Shown here piece by piece: positions 4,901 through 53,752 of a stretch of 64,000 bases of DNA. Location of the stretch: NCBI GenBank assembly GCA_030704615.1, contig CM060731.1, positions 67,952,001-68,016,000 of the forward strand, written 5' to 3'. How positions within the stretch are numbered: position 1 is the first letter of the stretch; each line of letters starts with the position of its first letter. A program made the translations under genes and the position numbers. Under the pieces are notes generated by a model, which was not told the DNA's origin, did no database searches, and worked only from the letters and a program-made list of their open reading frames with translations. Source of the stretch: Takakia lepidozioides. Its lineage: Eukaryota; Plantae; Bryophyta.

Positions 4901-7900
4901 GAAGCGCTTTGCTCTAGGTAAGGTACTGCATTGGATTTAGTTGGAAAGCTTGGGGCCTTTCCCTCTTTAGAATATGCCTACACGGGCCATTCCCTGCAAC
5001 TCCCTGGAGTGTGATCTCTGAATGGTAACAAGCGGACCCCTACCGCTTGGGGGCAGCCCCGCCGCCCAAATTGGGCAGTCGTATGCTCTGTCTAGCATAC
5101 TCGGCACTTGGGCTTGGGTTGGTTCCTGTGCTTAAACTTATAGCCTGCGACTACAATCAAAATTTTAGCTCCTATCAAAACTCCTCAGGGTGATTCCTGG
5201 GAATTGGTTACTTATGCCAAATCTAGGGCTTCATGTGTAGTTTTTGGGGTGAATCCCAGGATGGACGATGTGTCCTTTAAAACTACATGCTCTAGCTTAG
5301 GCTTGGATTTCATGGCTAATGGTACCATCTCGAGACTTGATAACAGGGGTACGTTGAAGGTTGCAATGACCAAAAGTGCTTCTAATAGAGTCCCACATCA
5401 ATTCAATCTCAAAGAAGTTCGTCCCTTGACTGGCTGGAGAGCGGTCTTAGACATTGGTGATTCAATGGGGCGCTCTAGGAAGACAACCAAGGGCAACGAC
5501 TTCAACTTGAGAGTTTCTAATCGGTTTGATGCTCTGGATGAGGTTGAATCCAAACAGCCAGAAGGACAAAATGCCCCTAAGTGTTCGGAACCTGAACGTC
5601 CTGAATCTGAAGGATTTGGTACTCTGAATGGTTTACCAATCCTCAAGGTTTACACAAGATGAACAAATTCTATACACGGGGTAATTGTCCCCAAGCCGTC
5701 AGATGGACAATCTGTCCCTAAGTGTGCAGAGCCTGAACGTCGTGTAACTGAAGGATTTGGTACTCTAAATGGTTTACCAATCCTCAAAGTCTACACAAGA
5801 CGAGCAAAATCTATACACGGGGTAATTGTCCCCAAGCAGTCTGACAGACAATCTGCCCCTGTGTGTGCGGAGCCTGTGCGTCGTGTAACTGAAGGATTTG
5901 GTACCCTGAATGGTTTACCAATTCTCAAAGTTTACACAAGACGAGCAAAATCTACACATGGGGTAACTGTCCCCCCTTTGCAGAACGGTTGGCCGTCCAG
6001 GAGCAATCACAAGCACCTAGACGAATAAACTGGTTGGAGATGTCAATGGTTATAAATGGGCAGGTAAGATGTGTACTCTCAAGGCAGCCTCTGCCAAACG
6101 CGGTCAAAAAGGGGTTGGATTCTTTGTCCGTGATTTCTTGTTTGACAATTGTGAAATTATCAACAAGGGTTTGAGGTACGAGCATAGTATCTGGCTAAAA
6201 CTGAATCTGAAGGGCGGCATGAGTACGAAGGACCTCTTTGTGGGTTGTGTTTACATGCCCACAGAGGGGACCCTTAGTGCTGACGCAGACAAAGCCTTCG
6301 AAGATGTAAAGCTGGACTGTGCTTCGTTCCTTGCCAAAGATCAGGTGGTGCTATTGGGTGACTTCAATGCCCGGGTGGGCAAAGGGCTCCATCAGGACGA
6401 TATCATTGGACCTTTTGGTGAGGACGAGCTGAATTCTAATGGCAGACGGTTAATTAACTGTCTAGAAGAGCTTCAGCTTTTGACCTTGAATAACAGGACA
6501 AGAGGTGACCAAGTGCAGTGGACTCGTGAGAAATCCCAAACTGGGGAACGTTCCATTGTGGACTATATCATAATGGACAAAAATTTGTTCCCCCAGTGTG
6601 CCAATGTGTTGATCGACAGAACTGATATTGGTACCTCTGACCACTTCCTGGTTTGGACTGAGATCAAAAGGTGTTTTCCCAACACCAAGAGATCTGTGAA
6701 ACGTTCGATTCGGAAGTGGCGCAGAGAAAAATTCCATAATGAGGAGGTCAAGGCTGAGTACGTCCAGGCCTTGCAAGAGGCTCTCCCTCATTTTGTCCAA
6801 TCGCTCCAAGAACTTCAGTCTCGCTCTGATAACGCAAGAAATGAAGTCGAAAGAGCAGTGGACTCTTGGGAGAGTTTCGTTTCCTCCGTGGCTGACAAGA
6901 TCATTGGGAGGAAACTAATTGTCTGCGGTAGAGCTGTTAATTGGTGGACCAAAGAGATTAAACTCAAGATAGCTGAGAGACGAGCCCTCTATAAAGAGTG
7001 CTGCAATTTGAAAACCAACAGAGAATTGTGGGCGAGGTACTACCAGCTCCGTAAAGATATCAATCAGCTTGTTAGGTCTCAGAAGAAATTATACTGGGAC
7101 AAGTTATACAGTGAAATAAACTCAAACCACCATGGTGGTAATGACAAGAAATTCTGGTTGGCCCTTCAACATTTGTACAAGCCGAAAAACGGTCAGCAAG
7201 TACAAGCGCTGAAGACTACTAAAGGTGCAGTGGTGACTTCATCGGTTGACATTGTCAAAACCTTTGAAACTCACTACAGTATCCTTGGCAGAGCTTCTAG
7301 GTCTAACAGTGAGGGGTCTTCTGCTGAATGGAGGGACACAGTTGGAAAAACTGTTCCTATGATTCAAAACAGCCCTGATGAACTGGAGTATATTTCAATG
7401 GCTTATAACGCTCCCATTAGTTCTTCTGAGATTGTGGAAGCAATTGAACATTTAAATGGATATAAAGCTGGTGGACCTGATGGTATTGTCAACGAGCTTA
7501 TCAAGCACGGTGGCGATCCCATGATAGAGGCCCTAGTTCTCCTCTTTAACCTTATCTGGAAGACTGAAATGATCCCCTTTCGCTGGCGACAGGGGGTCAC
7601 TGTCAATCTATACAAGAAGGGTGACAGAGAAGAACCGGGGAACTACCGTGGCATCACGCTCCTCAATGCTGTTGGCAAGACATTCTGCAGAGTTATAAGT
7701 ACTCGTCTCGAGGTTGATCTGGAGTCTAGAGGTTGTTTCCACGAAGGCCAAGCTGGCTTTCGGCGAAACAGGGGCTGTGTGGATCATATCTTCACTCTAA
7801 GCCAGATTATCCAGGGAAGGAAAAAAGAAGGGAAACCCACTTATGTTTTTTTCCTGGATGTCAAAAAGGCTTATGACACAGTGTGGAGAGATGGCCTATG

Positions 7901-10633
7901 GTTCCGCCTCTGGTCTTGTGGGATCAAGGGAAAGATGTGGAGAGTTGTCCACAACTTGTATGCTCACACCAAAAGCTGTGTCACTGTTAACGGACAGAAG
8001 TCCAACTTCTTTGACATAGACCAAGGTGTAGCTCAAGGATGTACTCTCTCCCCTCTGCTCATCAATGTTTTCATCAATCAACTCCTCGAGGATGTGGAAA
8101 GTGAGGGATTTGGGTTAAGGGTGGGTGATACCACCATACCAGCCCTTATGTTTGCAGATGACTTCGCAGGCATAGGGGAGACTCCAACCAATCTCCAGGA
8201 GTTGATTGATTGCGCGAAGAGATACTTTGATCTTTGGGGGCTAGAGGCTAATGTCAGCAAATGTGCAGTGGTAGCATTCAACGACAGAGGAGAGGGAGGA
8301 AGTGATCTTAAGTGGCAGTGGGGTAGCCAAGAGATCCCGGTCCTCCCTTCCTACACTTACCTGGGCGTTGAGTTCTCCTCCAATTGTAATTGGGATGCAC
8401 ATATCCGGAAAGTTGTTCAAACTGGCAAGGGCAAAGCTCTGGGGCTCACTAAATTTTTCCACTGCAGAGGGGTCAACTCTGAGGTTAAGAAAACCATGCT
8501 TTGTCGCGTTATTAGACCTGCCTTGGAGTACGGATCTGCTATATGGGTTGATAACTCCAACCAGGCTAAGTCTCTAGAATCCATTCAAGTGGGGGTGCTT
8601 AAGGAGTGTATGTCAGCATGCTCCAAAACAGCCAATGTGGCTGTTCGGGGTGAGTTTGGCATTCCGTCCTTAAGCTCCCGACGAGATGAATTCAAGGTCA
8701 GATGGTGGGGTCAGCTGCAACATATGCCCAACACCAGATATACTAAATTAATCGACTCTATATCTTGGAAACAGGACCGCCCTGTCAAACAGGCTAAGTC
8801 CTGGCAGAAGAGAGTAGAAGAGATCCTCAAGGACCTGGACCTGGATCCGCAAGTCTTGACCCTGCTGGATAAATCTGACTTAGAGGCTGTAGTGTCCTCA
8901 GCCATGTCTGTTGCCATGAGATTGTCTGATGAAAATGAAGTTAGGCAGAAAACTTCCCTGAACTTGTTTCCAGTCTGTGACATGGGGGAGGACATCTTGG
9001 ATGACCTCAAGGGTCTACCCACTCTCGGCACTAGACTGAAATTTAAACTCAGGGCAGGAAGCCTACCTTTGAACAGCAAACAGAAGCAGAGAGGAAAGGG
9101 AGAGTGCAATCGCCCGTTGTGTGGGCAATCTGAAGACAGTATTCATTTTCTGATACACTGTCCGGGGTTCTCTCACCAAAGAGACGCTCTCTTCAATCTA
9201 TTAAGGGAATTGTACCTGTACCCCTGTTTACCAACTTTGAAAGTCTCGAGGCTGAGCCAAAAGCCCAGGCCCTCCTGAGGCCTAGTTTTTGGGCAAATCA
9301 CACACAGCAGATTGATGCTTGTGTGAAGGGATTTCTAGAGGATATCTGGAAAACCCGGATTAATTCTTTATATGGAGGTAAGTCTTACTACCAACGTCAG
9401 CCCCTGACAGAGGTAGGTTCTGTCCCTTTTGTTCCCGCTCAAACTGGGCGCGGGGTCAATGGCCACAAGGCTACGGCAAACAACGTCTTATGGGTACAAT
9501 CTCTTGTGAGCTCTGCCCAAACTGGGGAAGGGGTCTGTGGCCACAAGGCTACGGACAATGTCTTATAAGTGATTTCTTTGAGATCCGTGGGAGATTCATT
9601 TTTCTATTCAGTGATACCCAATCTCTCACAGAGGTCTTCCATTATGAGGATCAGAAATTCTTGGCAGCTTACCTACATGAGGCCCTGAATCTTAGACAAT
9701 CCCCTTGCTTTTGGGCTGCTTGTGGGGGCCCCCTCTATCTTTTCTTCTTTCTTTCTTTCTCTTGTCCCATAAGCTCTTTGAGCTTTCCTCAGTTGCTATA
9801 GAATACTATTTCATTTCATTTTCTTTGTGTCTGTCAAAACCAATCCTGGCTGATTTACCCACCATCTGTCACCTGACTAGATTTACAGTTATTGTCTCAC
9901 AGAGTATATTATCGCTTACAAGTCAATCAGCTTTTGGACGACCTTGAGCAACAGATTGATAAATGAACCAACATTTTGCCTAGTTATAGGTCTTCTTATC
10001 AAGACTTTCAAGATTTAGCCTGGTGATACACCAACTTATGCATCAAACTAAAGCAATTCATGTGGAGACCATGATAATTAAGTGCAACGCGAGGTGACAG
10101 TTCGGGCGCGCTACAGAGGGGGCCTAGTGACCTCGCTAAGTTTTCGGCCATGGAACCTACATGGCATGGCAGAGCTGCAGATGCAATATCAAATACTTTG
10201 TGGCACGTTGAGCGCCTGCTGACTACATGCTCTGATCACATTTTCACACTGCATAAAGACTAGATGCTATTGCAAATTGTCTTGGGAACAGTTGGGGAAA
10301 GACGACCTGGTAATGCCAGTTAGGCCGCTCCTGCGCGCGCTTGGACGCAACAGATTGCCCGAAATAACGCTCCATCATATCCAAGAACTGATCATTATCC
10401 TCAGAGGAGCACCGGGGGTCGCGAATTACAATCGCCCCTGTCTCCCGCAAGCATGCTGCCACTTCCTCACAGCTCAATTTTAACCCATCATCCAGATCTA
10501 TCTCTCCTTCTGCCTTCTCATTCAACCCATCAACTAACTCTACCTTCCCATTGGAATGCCCGCAGAGATCAGGTCCGAAAAGGCCGGAACTGAATCTCAA
10601 ATAGGGCTCTATATCTATCACCGGCAGCTCCAT
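1903..10633 (-). CDS. 2-oxoglutarate/Fe(II)-dependent oxygenase (At5g48020-like). Exons 10633-10307, 4655-4482, 4258-4166, 3807-3739, 3134-2928, 2525-2400, 2046-1903
   Basis: Exons join in frame: MELPVID...RPNWHYQ|VGVTPEG...WRYMWRIGPRP|ELNAEPVVPEGF|VVAEMTAIGFG|GPHLLAPTGSDL...GYHYDLNFLTIHGRSRFPGL|LEWLTGGECAAGMHEV...WRVSST|MFAHIASD; HxD...H iron triad present. Confidence 0.9.
3578..3700 (-). mobile_element. Short 3'-end remnant related to the intronic LINE (or a SINE sharing its tail)
   Basis: Reverse complement (gggccccc...tttctttc...gaagtaccatttcatttcatttcat) resembles 9724-9822 including the (TTTCA)n tail. Confidence 0.5.
5573..5975 (+). repeat. ~2.9 copies of a 141-bp (47-codon) tandem repeat upstream of the LINE endonuclease
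   Basis: gaaggatttggtac recurs at 5609, 5750, 5891. Confidence 0.9.
6069..9568 (+). pseudogene. LINE ORF2: AP endonuclease, reverse transcriptase, C-terminal zinc finger; frameshift near 9197
   Basis: GDFNARVG, VDYI, SDH (APE); PGNYRGITLL, QAGFR, FLDVKKAYD, GVAQG, FADD, YLGV (RT); the second copy at 53141-53743 restores the frame. Confidence 0.9.
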
Positions 10634-21459: not shown

Positions 21460-24400
21460 TCACACTACATGCCTGCCACGTTCTTCAGAAGACCTGGAAA
21501 CAGCTACACACAAGGTTCCCCAAGCCTTCCTCGCCTCAGTAAGCAGGTCTTGATATATATTAAACAGAATAGACTTGCCCCTGGGGGATCTTCCCTCATA
21601 CATCTGAGAACACCTAACCTTCCACAGGTTCCACAAGGTTAGAGCCCCCAGATTGGCCCAAACTGGGCATGAAGTAGGACTAAAAGAAGGCTGGAAATTC
21701 AAGAGCAGCAAAGAGGAAGAGATGGGGGATGGGGAAGGTATCCCAATTAGAGTAGAAACACATCACAGCTTTCCAAACTCTGGCAAGAAAAGGGCAGTCA
21801 GCCAGGCTGAGCCATGCATAAACCGCAAGAGGTGTTATTGAACAAGGTCTTGACATTGATTGGTAAGATCTTATGAGCCAATTTCCACAAGAAAGCTGAG
21901 ATTTTAGCTACCCTATGTTTCTTCCACATATCTTTCCATACCGAGTCCCAGTTGGCTGCTGACAGGTTCAAGTGGCTCCACTTTTCAGACCACCTAGATA
22001 AGAAAGAGGTGGGTCCTTCGAGGTGGTCATCCTCCGTGTCTGACTTGTGCTCTTCATAAAACTTTGTAATATCCAGAAGTCCATAATGTGGTTAAAAGAT
22101 ATTACTTTAATATTGTCTGTCTCATTCCTGGACAACAGAGAATAACCCATCTTAACTGTATAAGCAAAGAAAGGGGAGTGGTGGTCATCTGTCCAACTCC
22201 ACTCCCCTGGGTCAAATTGTAAAGCAACCAAGGGGTACTTAAGAAACCAAGTGAAGGTAGAGTGCAAGGCCCATTGCATTTCCAGCCCTGGCGGCGGGGT
22301 TGGATTGGCAGTCCCCTTCTCATCCAGCACTCTAATAGGGAAGAGGAGCTGCTTCTGGATATCCAAACAACCCGCGACACGAAGGCTGCCCTCACAATCT
22401 ACCACAAAAGCAATCCCAGAAGCCATATTCCATTGAGGGAGAGAACCAAAAGGATCGTGTTACCACCATTGCTTGATGCAGCAGTCCAGATTGGCGGTGT
22501 CTCCACATCGTCACTGTTGCTCAAGGGAGGACCGGGCCCTGGCACGTCTGGTGCCCACAATTTGAGACACAGTAGCTGTAGGAAGAAGATGCTGCCTAGA
22601 TGAGTAAGGCCACAGCTCCCAGAAACCCCACCCTGGTTTTTGACGGGACAACCTTTCTGAGTTGATTAAGCTGTTCCCAAAAAGGGGCTGACGGTAGGCT
22701 TCTGCATAATATACCGGTCTTCTTTGGACAAGCTTAGCCCTGATAGACTGCCAAGCCACCCAAATGGATTGCCATGGGCGAGATCCCAAGTTCACTTTAG
22801 CATTTTTCCCCTGAACAATCCATCGAAGGGAGTCGGCCCACAGGTGGGATGAGGAGGGTTTGGCCCCCATCAGATAGGGCTGGATTAACTTATTCCACGG
22901 GCTGTGACGATGAACAATGGCTCTAGGAATCCATTTAGCCAGAAGGGCCTTGATTTGAGTTGCCGGATCCAAAATACCAAGACATCCTCTTTTTTTTGGC
23001 TGTCACAGTTGTTCCCATGAGAGAAGAGCGCGCCTCACCGGGGATTGAGTGGTTGCACCCCAGATAAAGTTCCAAATGAGAGCTTTGATTTCTTTCACCA
23101 TCGAGGTACCCGGGTCCCAAACCGTTGCAGAAAACCAGCAGGAGCCAAGAAGCACTTGGTTTGCCACCAGAGCTCGACCAGCGATTGATAGCATGGATGA
23201 GCTCCAATGAGCAAGAGATTTTTTTAACCTAGAGATGACATTCTGCATTCTGCTCTGCTGGGACAGATTAAGACCTATCTGATGCCCAAGTAGGGTGTGA
23301 GATTCACCCTCACTAAGCCAATTAAGACCAATGTCTTGCCCCCAAGCGCTACAGTGGGAAGAGGCAGCCTGACTGTGCATCGCCGAGAGAATCTCCGTGG
23401 ATTTCAGCCAGTTAATGTTCAAACCAGAACCCAAGCAAAAATGTGCAAGGCTTGTACCGCACGGTCAATATTCTGTCTGTTTGAATTGTCCAGCAGTAAA
23501 GTGGTATCATCAGCATACATGGACAGTTTTACCATTTCGGTGCAAATGTGGGCAAGTGAAGGCCCACAATGTCCTGCCTGGCTTCAAACAGGTGCCCAAG
23601 AGAGTCAGCTGCAATGAGAAAAATGAAAGGTGCCAAGGGGCAACCCTGTCTTACCGACCTTGAAATAGGGACAGATTGGGAGATGACCCCACCATAACCT
23701 TACTGGAAGCAGACCTTAGAAGAATCCCCACCCAAGACAAGAAGTGACCATTCAAGCTAGTCTTTTCCAACGCAGCAAGGAAGAAGGTCCAATCAATCGA
23801 GTCAAAAGCCTTTTCGAAATCCAACATTAAGAAAGCAAGGGGCTGGTTGTTCAAGGTAGCCCGGTGAAGCGCTTCATGGGCAAGTAGAATATTATCAAGA
23901 ATCATACGGTCCTTAAGGAAGCCAGTCTGCTCCTTCCTAATGATTTTTGGAAGCAGGGGTTGGATCCTTAAAGCCAGCGCTTTGGCGATAATCTTATAAG
24001 TAGAGTTGAGCAAGGTAATAGGGCGGTAGTTAGCCACCTTATCCCTCTCCCCTTTTTTGTAGATGAGAGTGATAAGACCCTCCAAAATCTGAGAGGGCAT
24101 CAATTGTTTGAGGAGGATGTCGTTGGCCATATTGAGAAAGTCATCACCCAAAGTGCCCCATAAGGCTTTGAACAATTCAACAGGCAGACCATCCGGGCCC
24201 GGACTTTGAGAGAAGGCAGGGCTTCCCGAATTCAGACACAGTAAATGGTTCTGCCAGATTGGCTCTGTCCTCATCAGACAAGGAACAAGGAATGTTCCTA
24301 AGGAGAGTGTTTCTGGCCTCCACCACCTCGGGAGTGTGATCTGTTTTTTGGAAGAGCTGCCTGAAGAAGTCAGCTGCAATGCCAACCATCTTCTTTGGGA

Positions 24401-24892
24401 CAGTACTTGGGAGACCAGAGTTGTCAGACAGAGAGGGGAGAAAAGTAGAAGCTCGACGTTGGGCCGCTTTGACGAAAAAATATCTAGACATTTTCCCCCC
24501 CTTAAGTGACCAATTGACCCCCGCCTTGACCCTAATGAATTGCTGCCTAGAATGCAGAAGTAAGGATAGGTTTTTCTTAGCAGTCTTGTAAGAGATCAGG
24601 GTTTGTGGGTTGTCTTTTCCCTTTTGCATCTGAAACTGACAAATATGTAGGCATTTAGTTAGCGTTTTCTCTTTTCTGGAGGACTCTTCCGCTATTTTCC
24701 TAGACAGTTGCTGACATTTACTTCTAAGACTCTGAAGCTTCGAAAGAAAGAGGAGTGGGGGAGGAAAATGGAAGGTCAGCAGAGGACCAAACCCTTTGAA
24801 GCTGGAGGATAATCTTCGGGTCTTTGAGAAGGAGAGGGTTTAACTTAAAGAAACCTCTACCCCTTACCCTAGCCCCCGGGGTGTGGAGAGAG
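21460..24892 (-). mobile_element. Decayed L1-clade LINE ORF2 (end of endonuclease, RT, zf-RVT/C-terminus)
   Basis: GFFKLN, KSPGPDG, NYRPITLLNSTYKI, QTGF, LDFEKAFDSIDW, YADD, GLNINWLKS, LSIAGR, LWNLWKVR; multiple frameshifts. Confidence 0.88.
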
Positions 24893-25741
24893 CCTGGGGG
24901 GTGCACTCCTCATTAAATGTACCAGCCACGTGCGTGCACAGGAGGGGGTATTTTAAACCCCCCCATGTACAACATTATACATACAGAGGGGGGTTTAAAA
25001 CACCTTAAATATAATTTTACAGGAGGGGGTTGTTGTGTTTTAAGGGGTAGTGTAGTGGTAAGAGCGACGTTTTGACCGCGGGATCAAATCGCGGGATCAT
25101 CTTTTTGTTTTTTTTGTTTTTTTTCTCTACGCGGTCTTTCTCCCCTTCCCTCCCACCGCTTTCTCTTTTCCCTCCTCTCATCTCCTCTCCACTCCTCTCC
25201 CGCATTCGCCTTCCCTTCCGCGGGCTTTCTCTTTTCCCTCCTCTCCCCTCCTCTCCACAGGGCATGGTATTCTTCCTGATGTTTACAAGGTTTAGGGGAG
25301 AGTTTAGGGAAGCGATCCTTTTTGGTTGATGGGAGGGCAAATCCTCCATGGGTCATGACACAAGGTCAAGGACAATGTGGTGAGGGCACCTTCTTCTTCG
25401 ACCTATTTCAGCCTGTCTTGCCCTCTCATCAGAGTCGGCCCTAAATTTGTAGCACTGAGCAGACCTAGCATGAGTTTTTAGAAGATTGACAATGGTGGGA
25501 CAACGGCAATCGCAAGGTGTGGCGTTTTCTTAAGGTACGATGTGAAGATTTTTTTCCATCCTGCTATTGCAGGCTCTTGCCTCCTGTTAGTACCTGATTT
25601 GGTATTCTTCCAGATGTTTATAAGGTTATTGGGAGAGTCAGCTTGTTCTAAGCAGGCCGTGCTCAGCTGCACCGTGGTGGTTCTCACTGACCAATCCGTC
25701 GTTACCTGACTGCAGACAAGTATGCACACACAAGAGGTCCT

Positions 25742-26080
25742 CTTTTGATCTCAGTCCAAACCAGGAAGTGGTCAGAGGTACCAATATCAGTTTTGTCGAT
25801 CAACACATTGGCACACTGGGGGAACAAATTTTTGTCCATTATGATATAGTCCACAATGGAACGTTTAGGGTTTGGGATTTCTCACGAGTCCACTGCACTT
25901 GGTCACCTACAGTTGAAGTCCTTGCCCTTGGTTGTCTTCCTAGAGCGCCCCATTGAATCACCAATGTGTAAGACCGCTCTCCAGCCAGTCAAGGGACAGA
26001 CTTCTTTGAGATTGAATTGATGTGGGACTCTATTAGAAGCACTTTTGGTCATTGCAACCTTCAACGTACACCTGTTATCA
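25742..26080 (-). mobile_element. Internally deleted fragment of the RTE-like LINE inside the pack element
   Basis: Reverse complement matches ~5340-5508 joined directly to ~6503-6670. Confidence 0.85.
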
Positions 26081-26399
26081 ATGAGAGAACCCCGGACAGT
26101 GTATCAGAAAATGAATATTGTCTTCAGATTGCAGTAGCGGCAAAATTGATAAAATCAGGCATTGCTGATGAAGGCACCTTCTTCAAGACTTTTCACCCTG
26201 TTTTCCCCTCCTACCAGAATCGGCCCTAAATTTTCATGTTGAATTATGCAAGTTAGCTGGTTGAGTGAATCTAGGATAGTTTGGAATGACTTTGACATGA
26301 TACTGCCAATGTGACAACAGGAAAGTATCCAGAAACAGGTAACAAAGACGAGGAGAAGTTGTGGAATGAATATTTTTCTGACTCCAGACAATGGTAGGA

Positions 26400-27150
26400 C
26401 AACCGAGGCAAAAAGGTGAATGCCTATCAGATTACCAAATGTCATTCTGAACACTGCCCCTGCCCTGGTGGACATGTAGCCAAATGTGTGTGCATCGAGG
26501 ATAAGGGATCAGTGTTCAACTCTATGGCTGAACGAGATGTGGTGTTGTGGAGTGCGATGCTTGCAGGGTATGCACAACAGGGGTGCAGGATGGAGGCTCC
26601 AACCTTTGAGCAAATGATGGGGGAAGGGGTGAAGGCCCCCGACATAACGTTTGTGGAAGTTTGCAGTGCGTATGGCAGCCCTGGAAAAAGGCAAAGAGAT
26701 CCCTGGTGACATCATCAAATCTGCAATTGTACCAAAATTTGTCATCCTGAACATTGCTCTAGTGGCCATGTATGCCCAATGTGGGAGCATTGAGGATGCC
26801 AAGGGAGTGTTCAACACTATGGCTGAATGAGATGTGGTGTCGTGGAACGCGATGCTTGCAGGGTGTGCAGAGCAGGAGCGCGAGATGGGGCTTTGGAGAC
26901 CTGAAAGCAGATGATGGGGGAAGGGGTGAAGCTCGACCACATCATGTTTGTGTGCGTTTGCAGTGCGTGTGCAAGCCTGCAGCCCTGGAAAAGGGCAAAG
27001 AGGTGCATGGTTGCATCACCAAAGCTGGAATGTACCAGATCTGATTATTAACAATACCCTTGTGGACATGTATGCCATTGTGGGAGCATTGAGGATGCGG
27101 AGGGAGTGTTCAACACTATGGCTGAACAAGGTGGTGTCGTGGAACACGAT
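26400..27150 (+). pseudogene. Degenerate PLS-class PPR repeats
   Basis: VFNSMAERDVVLWSAMLAGYAQQG...EQMMGEGVK.PDITF; LVAMYAQCGSIEDAKGVF; frameshifts. Confidence 0.85.
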
Positions 27151-27239
27151 TCATCCAAGAGGTCGATTTTAAACACAAGATTACTTCTGATTCCCTGCGG
27201 ATCAATAGCTACAAGAAAGCTGCGTGGGTAGATGGTCAA

Positions 27240-28430
27240 CTGGAAACAGCAGCGGCAGCAGTGACAATGTCACCATGGACCTCTTCCCCCTTTTCCAGAG
27301 CTCCCAGGCTTGCACACGCATTGCATTCTGCTAACATTACATTCCACGTGATCAAAGATCGTTGAGGCATTCTGTTGAACACTTGGTGAGCATCAATGAT
27401 GCTCCCGCACATAACATACATGTTGACAAGGGTGTTGAGTAGAAAAACATTTGACGTGAATCCACTTTGGATGATGTGAGTATGCACCTGTTTTCCAGCT
27501 TCCAAACCTTCCATCTTGATGCACTTAAGCAAGAGACATACACACATATCTGAATCTGGTGAAATGCCTTGTGATGTGGTTAGGCTTCACCCCTTCCCCC
27601 ATCATTTGCTCATAGGTCTCCAAAGCCTCCATCCCGTGCCCCTGCTGTGCATACCCTGCAAGCATCACGTTCCACGACACCACATCTCGTTCAGCCAGAG
27701 TGTTGAAAACTCCCCTCACATCCTTAACGCACCCACATTTGGCAAACATGTCCACAAGGGCAGTGTTCAAGATGACATCTGGTACAATTCCAGCTTGCTC
27801 CTAGGCTTTCACACGCATTGCAAACACAAACAAATGTGATGTGGTTGGGCTTCACCGCTTCGCACATCATTTGCTCATATGTCTCCAAAACATTCCTACC
27901 ACACCTATGCTTGGTAAATCCTATCAACATAATATTCCACGTGATCAAAGATCATTGAGGCATTATGTTGAACACTTGGTGAGCATCCCTGATGTTCCGG
28001 CACTTAACATACAGGTTGACAAGGGTGTTGAGTAGAAAAACATTTGGCGTGAATCCACCTTGGATAATGTGAGTGTGCACCTGCTTTCCAGCTTCGAGAC
28101 CGTCCATCTTGATGCACTTAAGCAAGAGACAGACACATATTTGAATCTGCTGAAATGCCTCATTGGTTTAGAGTCTGTAGAGCCTCTGTCAGGCTGTCGC
28201 TTAAAGTATCTTCACATGCCCAGAAGTGCCAGAAGAGGCATTGTGGACTCCCTCTCTTGATCCTCTTTCAGAAGCTGTGGTCATGGTTGAGGTGCCTGAT
28301 TTTATCAACTATGCCACTGCAGCTACTGCCTTTAGTTGACCATCTACCCATGCAGGTTTCTTATAGCTACTGACCCCCACATGGAATCAAGGTAATCTGG
28401 AGCTTGAAGTCCAGCCCTTTTGGATGAATC
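27240..28430 (-). pseudogene. Inverted block of PPR N-terminal region and PLS repeats (segment duplicated at ~27330-27560 and ~27935-28160)
   Basis: GKQVHTHIIQSGF.SNVFLLNTLVNMY..CGS..DAHQVFNRMPQRSLITWN; GVKPNHITFVCVCNAC. Confidence 0.85.
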
Positions 28431-28439
28431 TGGACCCAC

Positions 28440-29187
28440 ACTCTATTGTACCAGATGTCATTTTGAACACTCCCCTGGTGGACATGTATGCCAAATGTGG
28501 GTGCATTAAGGATGCAAAGGGAGTTTCCATGGCTGAACGAGATGTGGTGTCGTGGAGTGCGATGCTTGCAGGGTATGCACAGCAGGGACGTGGTATGGAG
28601 GCTTTGGAGACCTATGATCAAATGATGGGGGAAGGGGTGAAGCCCGACCACATCACGTTTGTGTACATTTGCAATGCGTGTGTAAGTCTGTCAGCTTTGG
28701 AAAAGGGCAAAGAGGTCCATGGCGACATTGTCAGATCTGCAATTGTATCAAATGTCATTTTGAACAATACCCTCGTGGACATGTATAAAGGGAGTGTTCG
28801 ACGTTATGGCTGAACGAGATGTGCTGTCGTGGAGTGCGATGATTGCAGGATATACACAGCAAGGGTGCGGGATGGAGGCTTTGGAGACCTATGAGCGAAT
28901 AATGTGCGAAGGGGTGAAGCCTGCACTTTGCATTGCATGATGTTGAGGAAGAGCTTAAAGAATCGTCTCTTTGCCACCACAATGAGAAGCTGGCCATTGT
29001 TTTTGGGCTTATCAGCACACCCTCTGGGATGTCTTTAGGGATCATCAAGAATCTTTGGATGTGTGGTGATTACCACACAGCCACCAAATTCATCTCAAAG
29101 ATAGCTAAGCAAGAGATTGTTGTACGGGATGCAAACCGCTTTCACCACTTCCAAAATGGTGTTTGTTCTTGTGGGGAGTATTGGTGA
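28440..29187 (+). pseudogene. PLS PPR repeats fused to the C-terminal part of a DYW deaminase domain
   Basis: [27 protein letters not shown]...[20 protein letters not shown]...[20 protein letters not shown]; E/E+ region and PG box missing; CxDC changed to CGDY. Confidence 0.9.
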
Positions 29188-29875
29188 AATGAAATGCTTG
29201 TCATCTAATTGAATGTATTGAACTATGTCAACTGTGAGTCAGGTTGGACTCCAACAGTGGCAACAAAGGCACACGAAATCTCTTTTTGGAGAGGAATTCT
29301 CAACAATAGGTTTTGAACATAATTGGACCTTGCGAATGTTGAAACTGTAGAACAAGTTCAGAAACTGTCCTAGTTGATGAACAGAGGTGCAGTGACTAGG
29401 TCTTGATGGTCTTCAAGAGGGTCACTCTCTGATGAAATACCCAGGATTGCATATCAGAAAATAGAAACTTTCTTCAGGCCTCTTGCACATCGGGCATTGA
29501 CAATGTCCCTTTCCTCTCGGCATCTGATTATTGTTCAAAGTGAGATTCCACAACAAGTTTTAACGAGGGCAAGCAATTTTTTTAATTAATTTATTAGATT
29601 TTATTCTATTTTTAAATGAATAAACTTGATATAATATAAAAACATACATATACATATTTGAGGGTATTTTTTTATTATTGAAAAGGGTACATACAGAAGG
29701 GGGTACTTTTTAAAAATTGCAAATTTCTATATATTTACAGGAGGGGGTTTTATAATCTTCAAAATGTATGTACAGAGGGGGTATAAATGATCCAAGGACC
29801 CGTATACAAGGGGTTTTTTTATTAGGCGGCGAACGCACGTGATACAGACATTTTATAAAGAGTGCATCCCCCAGG

Positions 29876-30005
29876 GGAGAGAGAGGTGAACAGTAGAGTG
29901 GTCGAAGCCCGGAGCTATGGTCCAATCTGACAATCCAGTTTAAGAAATGCTCGGAGCAGTAAAATCTATCTAAGCGAGCAAGAGAGCGGTTAGGAGGTAC
30001 CCTAT
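29876..30005 (-). mobile_element. Continuation of the L1 endonuclease on the far side of the pack element
   Basis: SLARLDRFYCS and FDH (SDH-like) motifs; cut at 30006 by the LTR. Confidence 0.8.
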
Positions 30006-32820
30006 TGTTAGACCAAGTGTCATGGTTTTAGTCATGGTTATCTAGAATTACCTACTTCTAGTCAACTATGACATTTTATATATTTATATTTATGTTTTGT
30101 GTGTTGGGACTTCATTTGGTCTCACATGCCAAGTGAGGTGTCGAGCCTCATTTGGGACATGGGGATAGGTTTCCCCCTTGTGAGGATCATCTTCTTGTAG
30201 TTGAGCCTCCATGAGCCTTTCTCCATGAGCCACCTCCATAGCTCTAGGTATTGAGAGGGAGTGTGGTGAGGGCTTTGTAGGGTGGATTCCGTTAGCAAGG
30301 GTGCCCTTGGCTTGACTTAGTTTATGTGATTGAGTGGATTCATGAGTGGAGTGTTTCCATTATGTTCGCTTTCATTATCACTACAAGAAGATGACCTTAT
30401 GCTCGTGAGTTCGGAGTGGAAGGGTTAGTTTAGCACTTGTGTGTTGAAGAGAGCTTGGTAGAGAGCTCTTGTGTTGCAAGGTGTTACAGGTGTTGCAAAG
30501 GAAAATCCTTGTGGCGTGGAGAACATGGATGTTAGGGTTTGAGAAGCATTACTTTGCTCTATAGAGGTGGAGCGCTTAAAGAGAGAGCTCTCACATCACA
30601 AAGCTTGCATGGTCTTGCAAGGGACAATGCTTGTATATGCACTAAGGGTTTGAGAGCTTGGAAAATAGTTCTTACATCACAAGCGAAGCATCTTATGTGT
30701 GGAGATATAGACACTAGGGTTTCAAGAGTAAGCTCTAGTTGTTCATGGTGTGAAAGAGAAGCCAAAGGGCGGCACATGCTTGGGTTGGAATCACCAAAGA
30801 AGGACTACAATAAGGGTAGCTTGAGGAGCATTGAGTAGCTCAAGAGAAGCTAAGAAGTGGTTGTTCTCTCCATGGTGAAAAGAAGCCAAATGGGGTTTCA
30901 TTTGGTTGACAAACAAGCAAGCTAAGGCGCTAGAAGGGAGTGCTTTTGCTAATTCTATGAGTTCTTAGATTGCTCTTGGTGAAGCAAGTGGTTGACCAAG
31001 CAAGTGACGCATGTATGGAGCATGCTTTCCAAGTGCGGCTTCCAACTTTAAGCTTGAGGAGAACTAGAAGGTGAAGGGAACAAGTTCATTCCTTTGTGTA
31101 TGAGGTGATGCTTATGTGGACATGTTTTCAGCCCATTGAGGCTTCTATTTTCAAGCCTTGGAGAGCAAGAAGAAATGAAAAGGGCTGGTTTCCACTTGGG
31201 TGAAGGAAAAGCACTTGTAGAACACATGTTTGAGTTGGGGTTTCAACCTTAAGCTTGAGGAGAGCACGACTCTTGAGCTTGCAAGTGAAGGGACTTGAAT
31301 CTTCCTCTTTGCATGAGATGGAGATGTATTGATGCTTGGAGAAGCAACACATAGAAGCCAAGAGTGGAGCATGTGTGTGGATGGCGAAAGAAGAACACAT
31401 GAATGAGTGCAAGACTTGGTTGCTTGTCAAATGAGGTAAAAAGCTTGATTCTTGAGCTCCAAAGAGAAGTGAAGCTTGTTGTGTGGCAAATGCATTGCTA
31501 GGTGAGATGGAACCAAGCTTGGTTGTGGCTTGAGGTGAAGAAGATCAAGGTAGTTTGCCTTGGTATCTCATAGAAGTCATGGATGCTTGAGGAGAGCAAG
31601 CATGAAGCTGGAAGCCCAAACCCTAGCTTGGAATGCACAAACCCTAGCATGAGATGCACATGAAACCCTAGGTTCATGGGAACGGTCACCAAAGTGTGGG
31701 AACGGTCATTATAGGCTGGGAACATAGTGACATATAAAGACAATATAGGGCTTTTGGAGGATTTTCAAGGGCCTTTTGGAGGATTGTTTGGGGGATCTTT
31801 GGGGTCCTTTGAGGAGCTTTTGGAAGACACTCTGAGGTGCTTTTGTAAGGCACTTTGAAGAGCTTTTGAAGAGGTATTTGGATGACTGTTTGGAGGACTA
31901 TTTGCGGTCCTTGAAGGCCAAGTTTTGGCGAGTCTTTGGAGCCTTTGGAGGGCTATGTGGAGGACCATTTGGGGTCCTTGAAAGCCAATATTTGGCAAGT
32001 TTTTGGAGCCTTTGGAGGGCTATTTGGAGGGTTGTTTGGGGTCCTTGGAGGCCAATATTTCGGCGAGCTTGAGAAGTCCTTGGCGACTTGTTGAAGGAAT
32101 ATTTGGGGTCTTTGAGGGCCAAGACTTTGCAGGCTCTTGGGGCTTTGGTGGACTGTTTGGAATAGCATTGTGTAAGCTTTGGGAGCCTTAGTGAGATTGT
32201 TTGAGAGACATCTTGAGGGCTCTTAGAGAGTTATTTGAGAGATCCTTGAAAGGTCTTGTCTATTGCTTAAGCAAGAGAGTGTGGAGATAGGGTAGTGGGA
32301 TGATAGCATGTTGTGATAGGAATTGCTTTAGTCTCTCTTCCGTGTAGTCTTCCACCCTCTTTGTAGGCCAAAACCTTTCCATAGGTGGAGGCAAGAGTCA
32401 GTCCGGGTTTGGGCTGCATGGGGTGTCTTGCAAGAGCGACACTGTGGAGTGTTTTTGGTATGGGGGAGTTACTGTTTGATTTTCTTGTGTTTGGATCCCC
32501 TCCACACCTGCATGCTTGACTGTGCGCCATGTCAGTTTTGTGTGGGCGCTTGTTTTCATACGAGGTTGGTCTGAATTTGATTACTGACCAATCCTAGAGC
32601 GTGCTGTCGGTGGTGAGGCTGGGGTGATGACCAGTCAGACCATCATTGTTCTCTTATGGTGAGGCTGGGTTAATGACCAGCAGACCATAGAAGTGCTTGC
32701 GGCGGATACAGGTGCAGGTACAGGTTTACGTTATGAACCTAGTAGTCTAAGCCATAAGCTGCAACAGGTTCTCTATCCGGTTACCTTGTGGAAAGGGGGA
32801 TTAAAGATAGGTTTACAACA
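30006..32820 (+). mobile_element. Putative ~2.8 kb 5' LTR of the Ty3/Gypsy element
   Basis: Starts TGTT exactly where L1 homology stops; ends AACA just before gag; degenerate GA/GT-rich repeats 31750-32230; partner LTR not in window. Confidence 0.6.
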
Positions 32821-51377: not shown

Positions 51378-53752
51378 AAACACCATGGTGGTAATGACAA
51401 GAAATTCTGGTTGGCCCTTCAACGTTTGTACAAGCCGAAAAACGGTCAGCAAGTACAAGCGCTGAAGACTACTAAAGGTGCAGTGGTGACTTCATCGGTT
51501 GACATTGTCAAAACCTTTGAAACTCACTACAGTATCCTTGGCAGAGCTTCTAGGTCTAACAGTGAGGGGTCTTCTGCTGAATGGAGGGACACAGTTGGAA
51601 AAACTGTTCCTATGATTCAAAACAGCCCTGATGAACTGGAGTATATTTCAATGGCTTATAATGCTCCCATTAGTTCTTCTGAGATTGTGGAAGCAATTGA
51701 ACATTTAAATGGATATAAAGCTAGTGGACCTGATGGTATTGTCAACGAGCTTATCAAGCACGGTGGTGATCCCATGATAGAGGCCCTAGTTCTCCTCTTT
51801 AACCTTATCTGGAAGACTGAAATGATCCCCTTTCGCTGGCGACAGGGGGTCATTGTCAATCTATACAAGAAGGGTGACAGAGAAGAACCGGGGAACTACC
51901 GTGGCATCACGATCCTCAATGCTGTTGGCAAGACATTCTGCAGAGTTATAAGTACTCGTCTCGAGGTTGATCTGGAGTCTAGAGGTTGTTTCCACAAAGG
52001 CCAAGCTGGCTTTCGGCGAAACAGGGGCTGTGTGGATCATATCTTCACTCTAAGCCAGATTATCCAGGGAAGGAAAAAAGAAGGGAAACCCACTTATGTC
52101 TTTTTCCTGGATGTCAAAAAGGCTTATGACACAGTGTGGAGAGATGGCCTATGGTTCCGCCTCTGGTCTTGCGGGATCAAGGGAAAGATGTGGAGAGTTG
52201 TCCACAACTTGTATGCTCACACCAAAAGCTGTGTCACTGTTAACGGAAAGAAGTCCAACTTCTTTGACATAGACCAAGGTGTAGCTCAAGGATGTACTCT
52301 CTCCCCTCTGCTCTTCAATGTTTTCATCAATCAACTCCTCGAGGATGTGGAAAGTGAGGGATTTGGGTTAAGGGTGGGTGATACCACCATACCAGCCCTT
52401 ATGTTTGCGGATGACTTCGCAGGCATAGGGGAGACTCCAACCAATCTCCAGGAGTTGATTGATTGCACGAAGAGATACTTTGATCTTTGGGGGCTAGAGG
52501 CTAATGTGAGCAAATGTGCAGTGGTAGCATTCAACGACAGAGGAGAGGGAGGAAGTGATCTTAAGTGGCAGTGGGGTAGCCAAGAGATCCCGGTCCTCCC
52601 TTCCTACACTTACCTGGGCATTGAGTTTGCCTCCAATTGTAATTGGGATGCACATATCCGGAAAGTTGTTCAAACTGGCAAGGGCAAAGCTCTGGGGCTC
52701 ACTAAATTTTTCCACTGCAGAGTGCTCAACTCTGAGGTTAAGAAAACCATGCTTTGTCGCGTTATTAGACCTGCCTTGGAGTACGGATCTGCTATATGGG
52801 TTGATAACTCCAACCAGGCTAAGTCTCTAGAATCCATTCAAGTGGGGGTGCTTAAGGAGTGTATGTCAGCATGCTCCAAAACAGCCAATGTGGCTGTTCG
52901 GGGTGAGTTTGGCATTCCGTCCTTAAGCTCCCGACGAGATGAATTCAAGGTCAGATGGTGGGGTCAGCTGCAACATATGCCCAACACCAAATATCCTAAG
53001 TTAATCGACTCTATATCTTGGAAACAGGACCGCCCTGTCAAACAGGCCAAGTCCTGGCAGAAGAGAGTAGAAGAGATTCTCAAGGACCTGGACCTGGATC
53101 CGCAAGTCTTGACCCTGCTGGATAAATCTGAGCGGCTGTAGTGTCCTCCGCCATGTCTGTTGCCATGAGATTGTCTGATGAAAATGAAGTTAGGCAGAAA
53201 ACTTCCCTGAACTTGTTTCCAGTCAGTGACATGGGGGAGGACATCTTGGATGACCTCAAGGGTCTACCCACTCTCGGCACTAGACTGAAATTTAAACTCA
53301 GGGCAGGAAGCCTACCTTTGAACAGCAAACAAAAGCAGAGAGGAAAGGGAGAGTGCAATTGCCCGCTGTGTGGGCAATCTGAAGACAGTATTCACTTTCT
53401 GATACACTGTCCGGGGTTCTCTCACCAAAGAGACGCTCTCTTCAATTCTATCAAGGGAATTGTGCCTGTACCCCTGTTTAACAACTTTGAAAGTCTCGAG
53501 GCTGAGCCAAAAGCCCAGGCCCTCCTGAGGCCTAGTTTTTGGGCAAATCACACACAGCAGATTGATGCTTGTGTGAAGGGATTTCTAGAGGATATCTGGA
53601 AAACCCGGATTAATTCTATATATGATGGTAAGTCACACTACCAACGTCAGCCCCTGACAGAGGTAGGTTCTGTCCCTTTTGTTCCCGCTCAAACTGGGCG
53701 CGGGGTCAATGGCCACAAGCCTACGGCAAACAACGTCTTATGAGTACAATCT
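51378..53752 (+). mobile_element. 5'-truncated second copy of the RTE-like LINE (RT + zinc finger)
   Basis: Nearly identical to ~7125-9505; small deletion at ~53130 breaks the frame; intact CPLC...HFLIHC. Confidence 0.93.

Follow-up and report, generated by a model that had tools for sequence, protein, structure and literature searches.

A probable Pack-type transposon with a scrambled PPR-DYW cargo in the moss Takakia lepidozioides

Pack-TYPE transposons of flowering plants comprise Pack-MULE, Pack-CACTA, Pack-hAT, Pack-PIF and Pack-Mariner; all class II superfamilies are represented among them in rice and maize, and only Pack-CACTA in Arabidopsis (Gisby & Catoni 2022, PMC8903248). They are non-autonomous elements with terminal inverted repeats (TIRs) and a target-site duplication (TSD) that lack a transposase and hold host-gene fragments in mixed orientation, with a TSD of 8 nt in Pack-hAT (PMC8903248). 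Capture of such fragments by template switching is likewise documented, and in an animal survey hAT was the commonest carrier superfamily of these Pack-TIRs, with a median microhomology of 2 bp (Tan et al. 2021, PMC8277862). A separate literature concerns the pentatricopeptide repeat (PPR) editing factors ending in a DYW domain, which number thousands in hornworts, lycophytes and the moss Takakia (PMC13386178). Their expansion, which gave Takakia 2,016 PPRs, is ascribed to dispersed duplication by retroposition (PMC13386178), the account also cited in the initial annotation of the locus studied here; since only 52% of the dispersed PPR duplicates of Takakia are reported to show intron loss (PMC13386178), room is left for a DNA-level route. 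Here, we describe a 4983-bp unit of Takakia lepidozioides that is probably a Pack-type element loaded with PPR-DYW sequence. It lies in a 64,000-nt stretch of contig CM060731.1 (assembly GCA_030704615.1, positions 67,952,001 to 68,016,000), hereafter the window, whose own numbering is used throughout.

The unit occupies positions 24893-29875, with a TIR at each end and an exact 8-bp TSD, GGAGAGAG, directly outside both (Table 1), as the initial annotation had drawn it. The TIRs are imperfect, being 77% complementary over 43 nt, and their pairing reaches ~45 nt once two small gaps are allowed. Over the outermost 16 nt, the core CCTGGGGGGTGCACTC, 15 of the 16 nucleotides agree between both ends, with one mismatch, and both TIRs start with CCTGG. 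At up to two mismatches, this core has no further site in the window beyond the two termini. By our own estimate (~5e8 position pairs x 4^-8 x ~1e-8 for the 16-nt core), roughly 1e-4 structures combining a TIR core with an 8-bp TSD would be expected by chance in 64 kb. Inside the TIRs, each end has three copies of a 12-nt subterminal motif, spaced 36-45 nt apart and on the plus strand at both ends, which are presumed to be transposase binding sites. The left subterminal region also holds a 23-nt near-perfect palindrome at 24947-25004; its MIR5148-like Rfam matches, found on both strands, are at chance level (E 0.6-0.75) and far under the gathering score.

The termini are shared with other loci. 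Using Logan contigs of four runs, aligned to 24400-30390, we found that one run is of the same genotype, with contigs identical to the unique flanks. A 269-nt contig aligns over 24893-25056, breaks exactly at 24893 and runs on into 76 nt of unrelated flank, and a 1964-nt contig aligns over 29736-29872 before 1.8 kb of different flank, so that contigs of other loci end at, or within 3 nt of, the element termini. Because contigs of the same organism break there into differing flanks, the termini belong to a multi-copy mobile family. Depth, which is a sum over contigs and not a copy number, is ~48,000 over 24800-24999 and 18,000-44,000 over 29600-29999, as against 240-570 in the unique left flank, i.e. 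greater by at least roughly 100-fold. Just inside the ends (25000-25199 and 29200-29599), the sum is ~9,000-10,000. This indicates that the termini are common to many more loci than the adjoining interior, a pattern known from Pack-TYPE families (PMC8903248).

The site of insertion is a decayed non-long-terminal-repeat retrotransposon of the L1 type. The minus-strand open reading frame (ORF) directly left of the unit matches the reverse transcriptase (RT) family RVT_1 (3.6e-16, Pfam). When the element and one TSD copy are removed in silico, a 74-codon ORF crosses the junction (..FDHSTVHLSL/HTPGARVRGRGFFKLNPLLLKDP..), with an ARLDRFY motif just upstream of it in a neighbouring frame. This ORF presumably follows the plant L1 layout, in which the linker comes after the end of the endonuclease. 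The RVT_1 match in the left flank and the ORF over the rejoined site agree with the earlier proposal of an insertion into an L1 whose frame is restored on removal. A search of the window for an empty-site paralogue yielded no further L1 copy that covers the insertion point at the DNA level, and the intact long interspersed nuclear element (LINE) at 6069-9278 belongs to a different clade from the host L1 (28% identity, RT only). On the right, ~120 nt past the insertion (about 30000-30390), the flank becomes another high-copy repeat with a summed depth of ~375,000 versus ~500 in the left flank, and the host L1 seems 5'-truncated there.

Between its ends, the unit is filled with host sequence. 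Pfam identifies PPR, PPR_2 and DYW_deaminase (4.7e-36) in the element and no other family, and no ORF of the element gives a transposase domain. A tblastn search with 163 full-length PPR proteins gives gap-free coverage of 26341-29184, or 57% of the element. As this part is PPR-like and 25742-26132 is LINE sequence, there is no room for a transposase, and the longest unassigned stretch is about 0.5 kb. The earlier description of an interior almost entirely PPR-like therefore holds for the 57% and for further PDF-like pieces (see below), and fails for the LINE portion. TIRs, a flanking TSD, a host-gene interior without a transposase and ends of a repeated family together characterize Pack-type elements, and all are found here, in line with the initial assignment. 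Therefore, we consider it probable that the unit is a non-autonomous cut-and-paste transposon of this type, in which host fragments were captured between intact ends before a trans-acting transposase inserted it into the L1. On this best explanation, the element's own sequence is its ends only, ~165 nt on the left and ~190-275 nt on the right.

The cargo is a two-stranded mosaic. Its longest ORF (129 aa, 28424-28813) has as full-length relatives PLS proteins with N-terminal repeats of the form ..LWxEFFSDPxQWWDNR..YPDFKHK..LW..NPPWV; the best of these relatives, at only 52% identity, belong to Diphasiastrum complanatum. The repeats are similar to a sequence known in OSB proteins as the 'PDF motif' (PMC6963530). 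Pfam is without a model for that motif, and 'PDF-like' is used here as a label by resemblance, with no membership implied. Two sets of PDF-like pieces, one on each side of the LINE portion, may correspond to the repeated N-terminal pieces of the initial annotation. The PLS repeats reported there are also present, but the stretch 27263-28453 lies on the opposite strand, which had been overlooked. Read in its own direction (28453-27263), this segment consists of a PDF-like piece and then two 'first PPR' copies with partial triplets, built as a 593-nt repeat whose copies are 72-91% identical. It meets the following PLS block head-to-head at 28445/28446, a breakpoint on each side of which many contigs continue differently.

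Two further observations concern the layout of these blocks. The first is that inverted PPR arms occur at 27571-27697 versus 28530-28656 (127 nt, 92% complementary) and at 26740-26888 versus 27629-27777 (149 nt, 85% complementary); they are 0.7-0.8 kb apart, and in a read-through transcript they would pair to form long double-stranded RNA. The second is that AAG/GTG stands at 25514-25519 and 26413-26418, at the same codon after both PDF-like motif starts (..QWWDNxxxK). Possibly, the parent genes have a conserved exon-intron boundary at this point, in which case genomic DNA, not mRNA, was the template of the cargo.

Whole-gene polarity is visible in the cargo, which leads from PDF-like motifs close to one end to a DYW terminus with its stop codon and 3' region close to the other. 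This would suit a working or recently inactivated PPR-DYW gene duplicated by the transposon, yet the coding content refutes it for this copy. There is no continuous ORF from PLS through E1/E2 to DYW: the blocks lie in different frames, stops interrupt them, one 1.2-kb segment is inverted, and the longest ORF is the one of 129 aa. The DYW end noted initially has its terminal part and stop codon and is confined to the C-terminal 84 residues of a domain that, when complete, has a PG box, HxE and CxxCH. In these residues HxE is kept as HNE (28978-28986), and CxxCH reads CGDYH (codons 29062-29076), its second Cys replaced by Tyr. E1, E2, the PG box and the rest of the first half of DYW have no match anywhere in the element. 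At the other end, the earlier reading of a CT-rich leader and candidate start codon is not supported, as the ATG at 25264 opens a 21-codon ORF out of frame with the surrounding PDF-like motif; natural relatives begin 50-170 residues upstream of that motif. The ATG is not a gene start. Judged from the different frames, the stops, the absence of E1, E2 and the first half of DYW and the mutated CxxCH, the cargo is a dead, scrambled pseudogene mosaic that encodes nothing functional.

The LINE portion of the interior is equally rearranged. Three antisense fragments of 51-171 nt, 391 nt in total, correspond to internal parts of a LINE elsewhere in the window and follow one another non-collinearly: the 5' part of ORF2, then ORF1, then the 3' end of ORF2. 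Fragments 1 and 2 are joined via a 2-nt filler, AC, and fragments 2 and 3 are joined blunt, and none of the three LINE junctions shows microhomology. Contigs with loose ends at 26082 and 26132 run on as LINE sequence. Splicing was rejected as the origin of the abutting pieces, since the donor borders are without GT..AG. Further downstream, the stretch 29361-29540 resembles, at 69-70% similarity, two LINE copies at their 3' ends, read in antisense (window 9067-9247 and 53316-53497). The window itself holds an apparently intact LINE at 5204-9278, with a 152-aa ORF, taken as ORF1, that has no Pfam match and a 1069-aa ORF2 with endonuclease and RT domains; the stretch matched by fragment 2, 5337-5507, lies inside the 152-aa ORF, upstream of ORF2. 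A second, broken copy is at 51411-53743, and from the 96-98% identity of the fragments in the element this LINE family looks young.

LINE sequence in the interior, together with the view that PPR expansion in early land plants proceeded mainly by retroposition (PMC13386178), could suggest that PPR retrocopies and LINE copies entered an empty TIR element successively, each with its own boundaries. Such boundaries are not seen. The element nowhere contains eight or more consecutive A residues, the region after the DYW stop included, and a repeat search of the element detected no internal duplications around any block, in answer to the initial annotation's question of whether the PPR pieces have insertion boundaries of their own. 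The LINE pieces are internal, lack 3' ends, are non-collinear and abut directly, and the PPR blocks are cut inside motifs and stand head-to-head. Successive nested insertion is thus very unlikely. A single processed PPR pseudogene was also rejected as a candidate, the arrangement being non-collinear and two-stranded and without poly(A). While retroposed PPR copies (PMC13386178) are likewise dispersed extra PPR-DYW sequence, here in a region rich in transposable elements, they have a poly(A) tail, a variable TSD and a collinear cDNA structure, as opposed to the TIRs, the 8-bp TSD and the rearranged two-strand mosaic of this locus.

The composition of the interior argues for capture rather than ordinary insertion, because the LINE pieces are short, internal, antisense, non-collinear and joined blunt or by a 2-nt filler, and because the PPR segments are head-to-head and cut at arbitrary points, with contigs diverging at 28445/28446. 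In the Pack-type model, the space usually taken by the transposase gene would have been filled with host DNA, namely at least three PDF-PPR-DYW segments in both orientations and the three antisense LINE fragments. Copies of these would most likely have entered through template switching (or end joining) while the element was being repaired or replicated, and a trans-acting transposase would then have placed the unit in the L1, creating the 8-bp duplication. A model of fusion between neighbouring insertions is unsupported, as the element has no internal copies of the TIR core or of the subterminal motif; in this lack of internal TIR remnants it differs from Pack-TYPE elements (PMC8903248).

The same structure could have arisen in place. 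In the single-copy Pack-TIR model, a short non-autonomous element sat in the L1 and its interior was later replaced there by PPR and LINE sequence during double-strand-break repair, such that the TSD-bounded unit never transposed with its cargo. This mechanism is described for most single-copy Pack-TIRs (PMC8277862), a second copy of the exact mosaic was not found, the inner segments beside the ends are 5-10x less deep than the ends, and the family copy in the 269-nt contig departs from this element after about 25056. However, a 429-nt contig from another sample spans the DYW end, the 3' region and the LINE-like piece at 97% identity, and has ~4x the single-copy depth of its run. We regard in-situ gap filling as unlikely and retain capture followed by transposition as the probable history.

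Several points weigh against that history. The TIR start, CCTGG, departs from the hAT form; no autonomous partner is present within the 64-kb window, where the TIR core has no other copy; the absence of microhomology at the three LINE junctions is as compatible with end joining as with template switching; depth was summed over contigs and does not give copy numbers; and no second full-length copy with the same cargo was retrieved from a metagenome collection or a protein database. A 28-nt degenerate TIR pattern, scanned exactly, had no match in the metagenome collection. Among 5.8 billion proteins, nothing exceeded 74% identity to the DYW ORF, in a collection evidently without the ORFs of this genome.

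With regard to superfamily, a hAT affiliation is indicated by the 8-bp TSD and by the reiteration of the subterminal motifs. The fairly short TIRs and the position of the motifs within ~150 bp of the ends are also shared with non-autonomous hAT elements of the Ds kind. The hAT TIR consensus starts 5'-YARNG (CA/TA), unlike the CCTGG found here, no hAT transposase is linked to these ends, and GGAGAGAG fits the nTnnnnAn target preference only halfway. We therefore call the element 'hAT-like by TSD' and stop short of counting it as a proven member of the superfamily.

Table 1. Features of the element and its host L1 (window coordinates; a dot marks features without strand).
Feature	Coordinates	Strand	Basis
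Host, decayed non-LTR (L1-type) retrotransposon, linker and RT part	23651..24892	-	ORFs, RVT_1 3.6e-16
Left TSD copy GGAGAGAG	24885..24892	.	Exact repeat
Left TIR (CCTGGGGGGTGCACTC...)	24893..24935	+	Inverted-repeat search; contig of another locus stops at 24893
Left subterminal region, three ACAG[GA][AG]GGGG(G)T motifs (24938, 24983, 25019) and 23-nt palindrome	24936..25035	+	Motif and repeat search
tRNA-like fragment (25040-25095), then T-rich run	25040..25125	+	Read from sequence
CT-rich low-complexity stretch, 66-nt internal direct repeat	25126..25260	+	Repeat search
Degenerate PDF-like N-terminal pieces (ILPDVYKV.., ..NPPWV, ..QWWDN..)	25264..25640	+	Relatives' motif mapping, direct repeats
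LINE fragment 1, antisense, 96% identical to window 6503-6670 (ORF2 5' part)	25742..25908	-	Comparison within window
LINE fragment 2, antisense, 97% identical to window 5337-5507	25911..26081	-	Comparison within window
LINE fragment 3, antisense, 98% identical to window 9125-9175 (ORF2 3' end)	26082..26132	-	Comparison within window
Second PDF-like set (EEKLWNEYFSDSRQW, in-frame stop, DNRGKK)	26178..26424	+	Motif mapping
PLS-type PPR block, ~2.4 triplets, period near 300 nt; two frames, three stops	26425..27151	+	Direct repeats, tblastn mapping
Isolated PDF-like piece (DFKHKITSDSL..)	27165..27272	+	Motif mapping
Inverted PPR block, two 'first PPR' copies and partial triplets; three frames, one stop	27263..28182	-	Repeats, Pfam, mapping
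PDF-like piece upstream of inverted PPR block	28293..28453	-	Inverted repeats, motif mapping
PLS block, ~1.5 triplets, two frames (change at about 28790); contains the 129-aa ORF	28445..28922	+	ORFs, Pfam, mapping
DYW deaminase, C-terminal 84 aa, ending ..CSCGEYW and stop	28933..29187	+	Pfam 4.7e-36, mapping
3' untranslated-like region, no poly(A), AT-rich from about 29560	29188..29687	+	Sequence inspection
Right subterminal region, three ACAG[GA][AG]GGGG motifs (29693, 29737, 29772)	29688..29832	+	Motif search
Right TIR	29833..29875	-	Inverted-repeat search; contig of another locus matches up to 29872
Right TSD copy GGAGAGAG	29876..29883	.	Exact repeat
Host L1, endonuclease-region end (ARLDRFY.., ..FDHSTVHLSL)	29884..30000	-	Joins left flank once element is excised

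Among the remaining features, the tRNA-like fragment in the left end combines D-arm-like and T-arm-like stretches, with T8 runs beyond it at 25108 and 25117, and may be a tRNA pseudogene or a SINE head; no tRNA or other RNA gene is called in this end by ARAGORN or Rfam.

The locus can now be set against the two described systems. It shares with Pack-TYPE elements (PMC8903248) the architecture given at the outset, including ends more repeated than the adjoining interior and the 8-nt TSD of Pack-hAT. It differs in that its host is of bryophyte grade and not an angiosperm, and in that its cargo comes from one hugely expanded family (PDF-PPR-DYW) and LINE sequence, PPRs not being mentioned in the main text of that survey (PMC8903248). 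Pack-TIRs formed in animals by gap filling/FoSTeST (Tan et al. 2021, PMC8277862) likewise hold foreign fragments between intact ends with blunt or short-filler junctions; unlike these, the present element has zero microhomology at its three LINE junctions and a far larger cargo (~4 kb) of many parts. Our literature search found no report of PPR-DYW cargo in Pack elements, nor of Pack elements in bryophytes. Accordingly, the element itself belongs to a known kind, and the link from Pack elements to PPR expansion is the potentially new part.

The contigs also bear on the PPR family as a whole. From one run, 77,619 contigs align to the PPR/PDF part of the element (25200-29200) at a nucleotide identity of at least 85%, and the summed depth of this part is thousands of times that of the unique flank. 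From these matches, the PLS triplets and PDF-like motifs of the genome's PPR family are therefore unusually uniform in their DNA, as would follow from very recent expansion or concerted evolution. Two runs that are presumed to be RNA contain contigs matching the element, and these are indistinguishable from those of thousands of PPR genes or from DNA.

In summary, the locus presents cleanly delimited PPR-DYW sequence within what is probably a cut-and-paste transposon, suggesting that a DNA-level route physically exists and that it scrambles repeat modules. DNA transposons can move PPR-DYW gene material; this copy adds only dead fragments and by itself demonstrates no contribution to functional PPR genes, its movement with the cargo would follow from the Pack-type model, and any role in PPR expansion is hypothetical. 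Dead mosaics of this kind can inflate PPR gene counts and mislead motif-based target prediction. A bolder proposal, which we hold to be improbable on present evidence, is that in this genome a high-copy TIR family with hAT-like 8-bp TSDs is a regular means by which PDF, PLS and DYW modules are duplicated, flipped and recombined as DNA, with long inverted PPR arms feeding small-RNA control. If true, Pack-type shuffling, and not retroposition, would account for part of the ~2,000-gene PPR expansion and for new combinations of repeats that have new RNA targets, and the long inverted arms (such as the 127-nt pair) would give hairpin RNAs for small-RNA control of the family.

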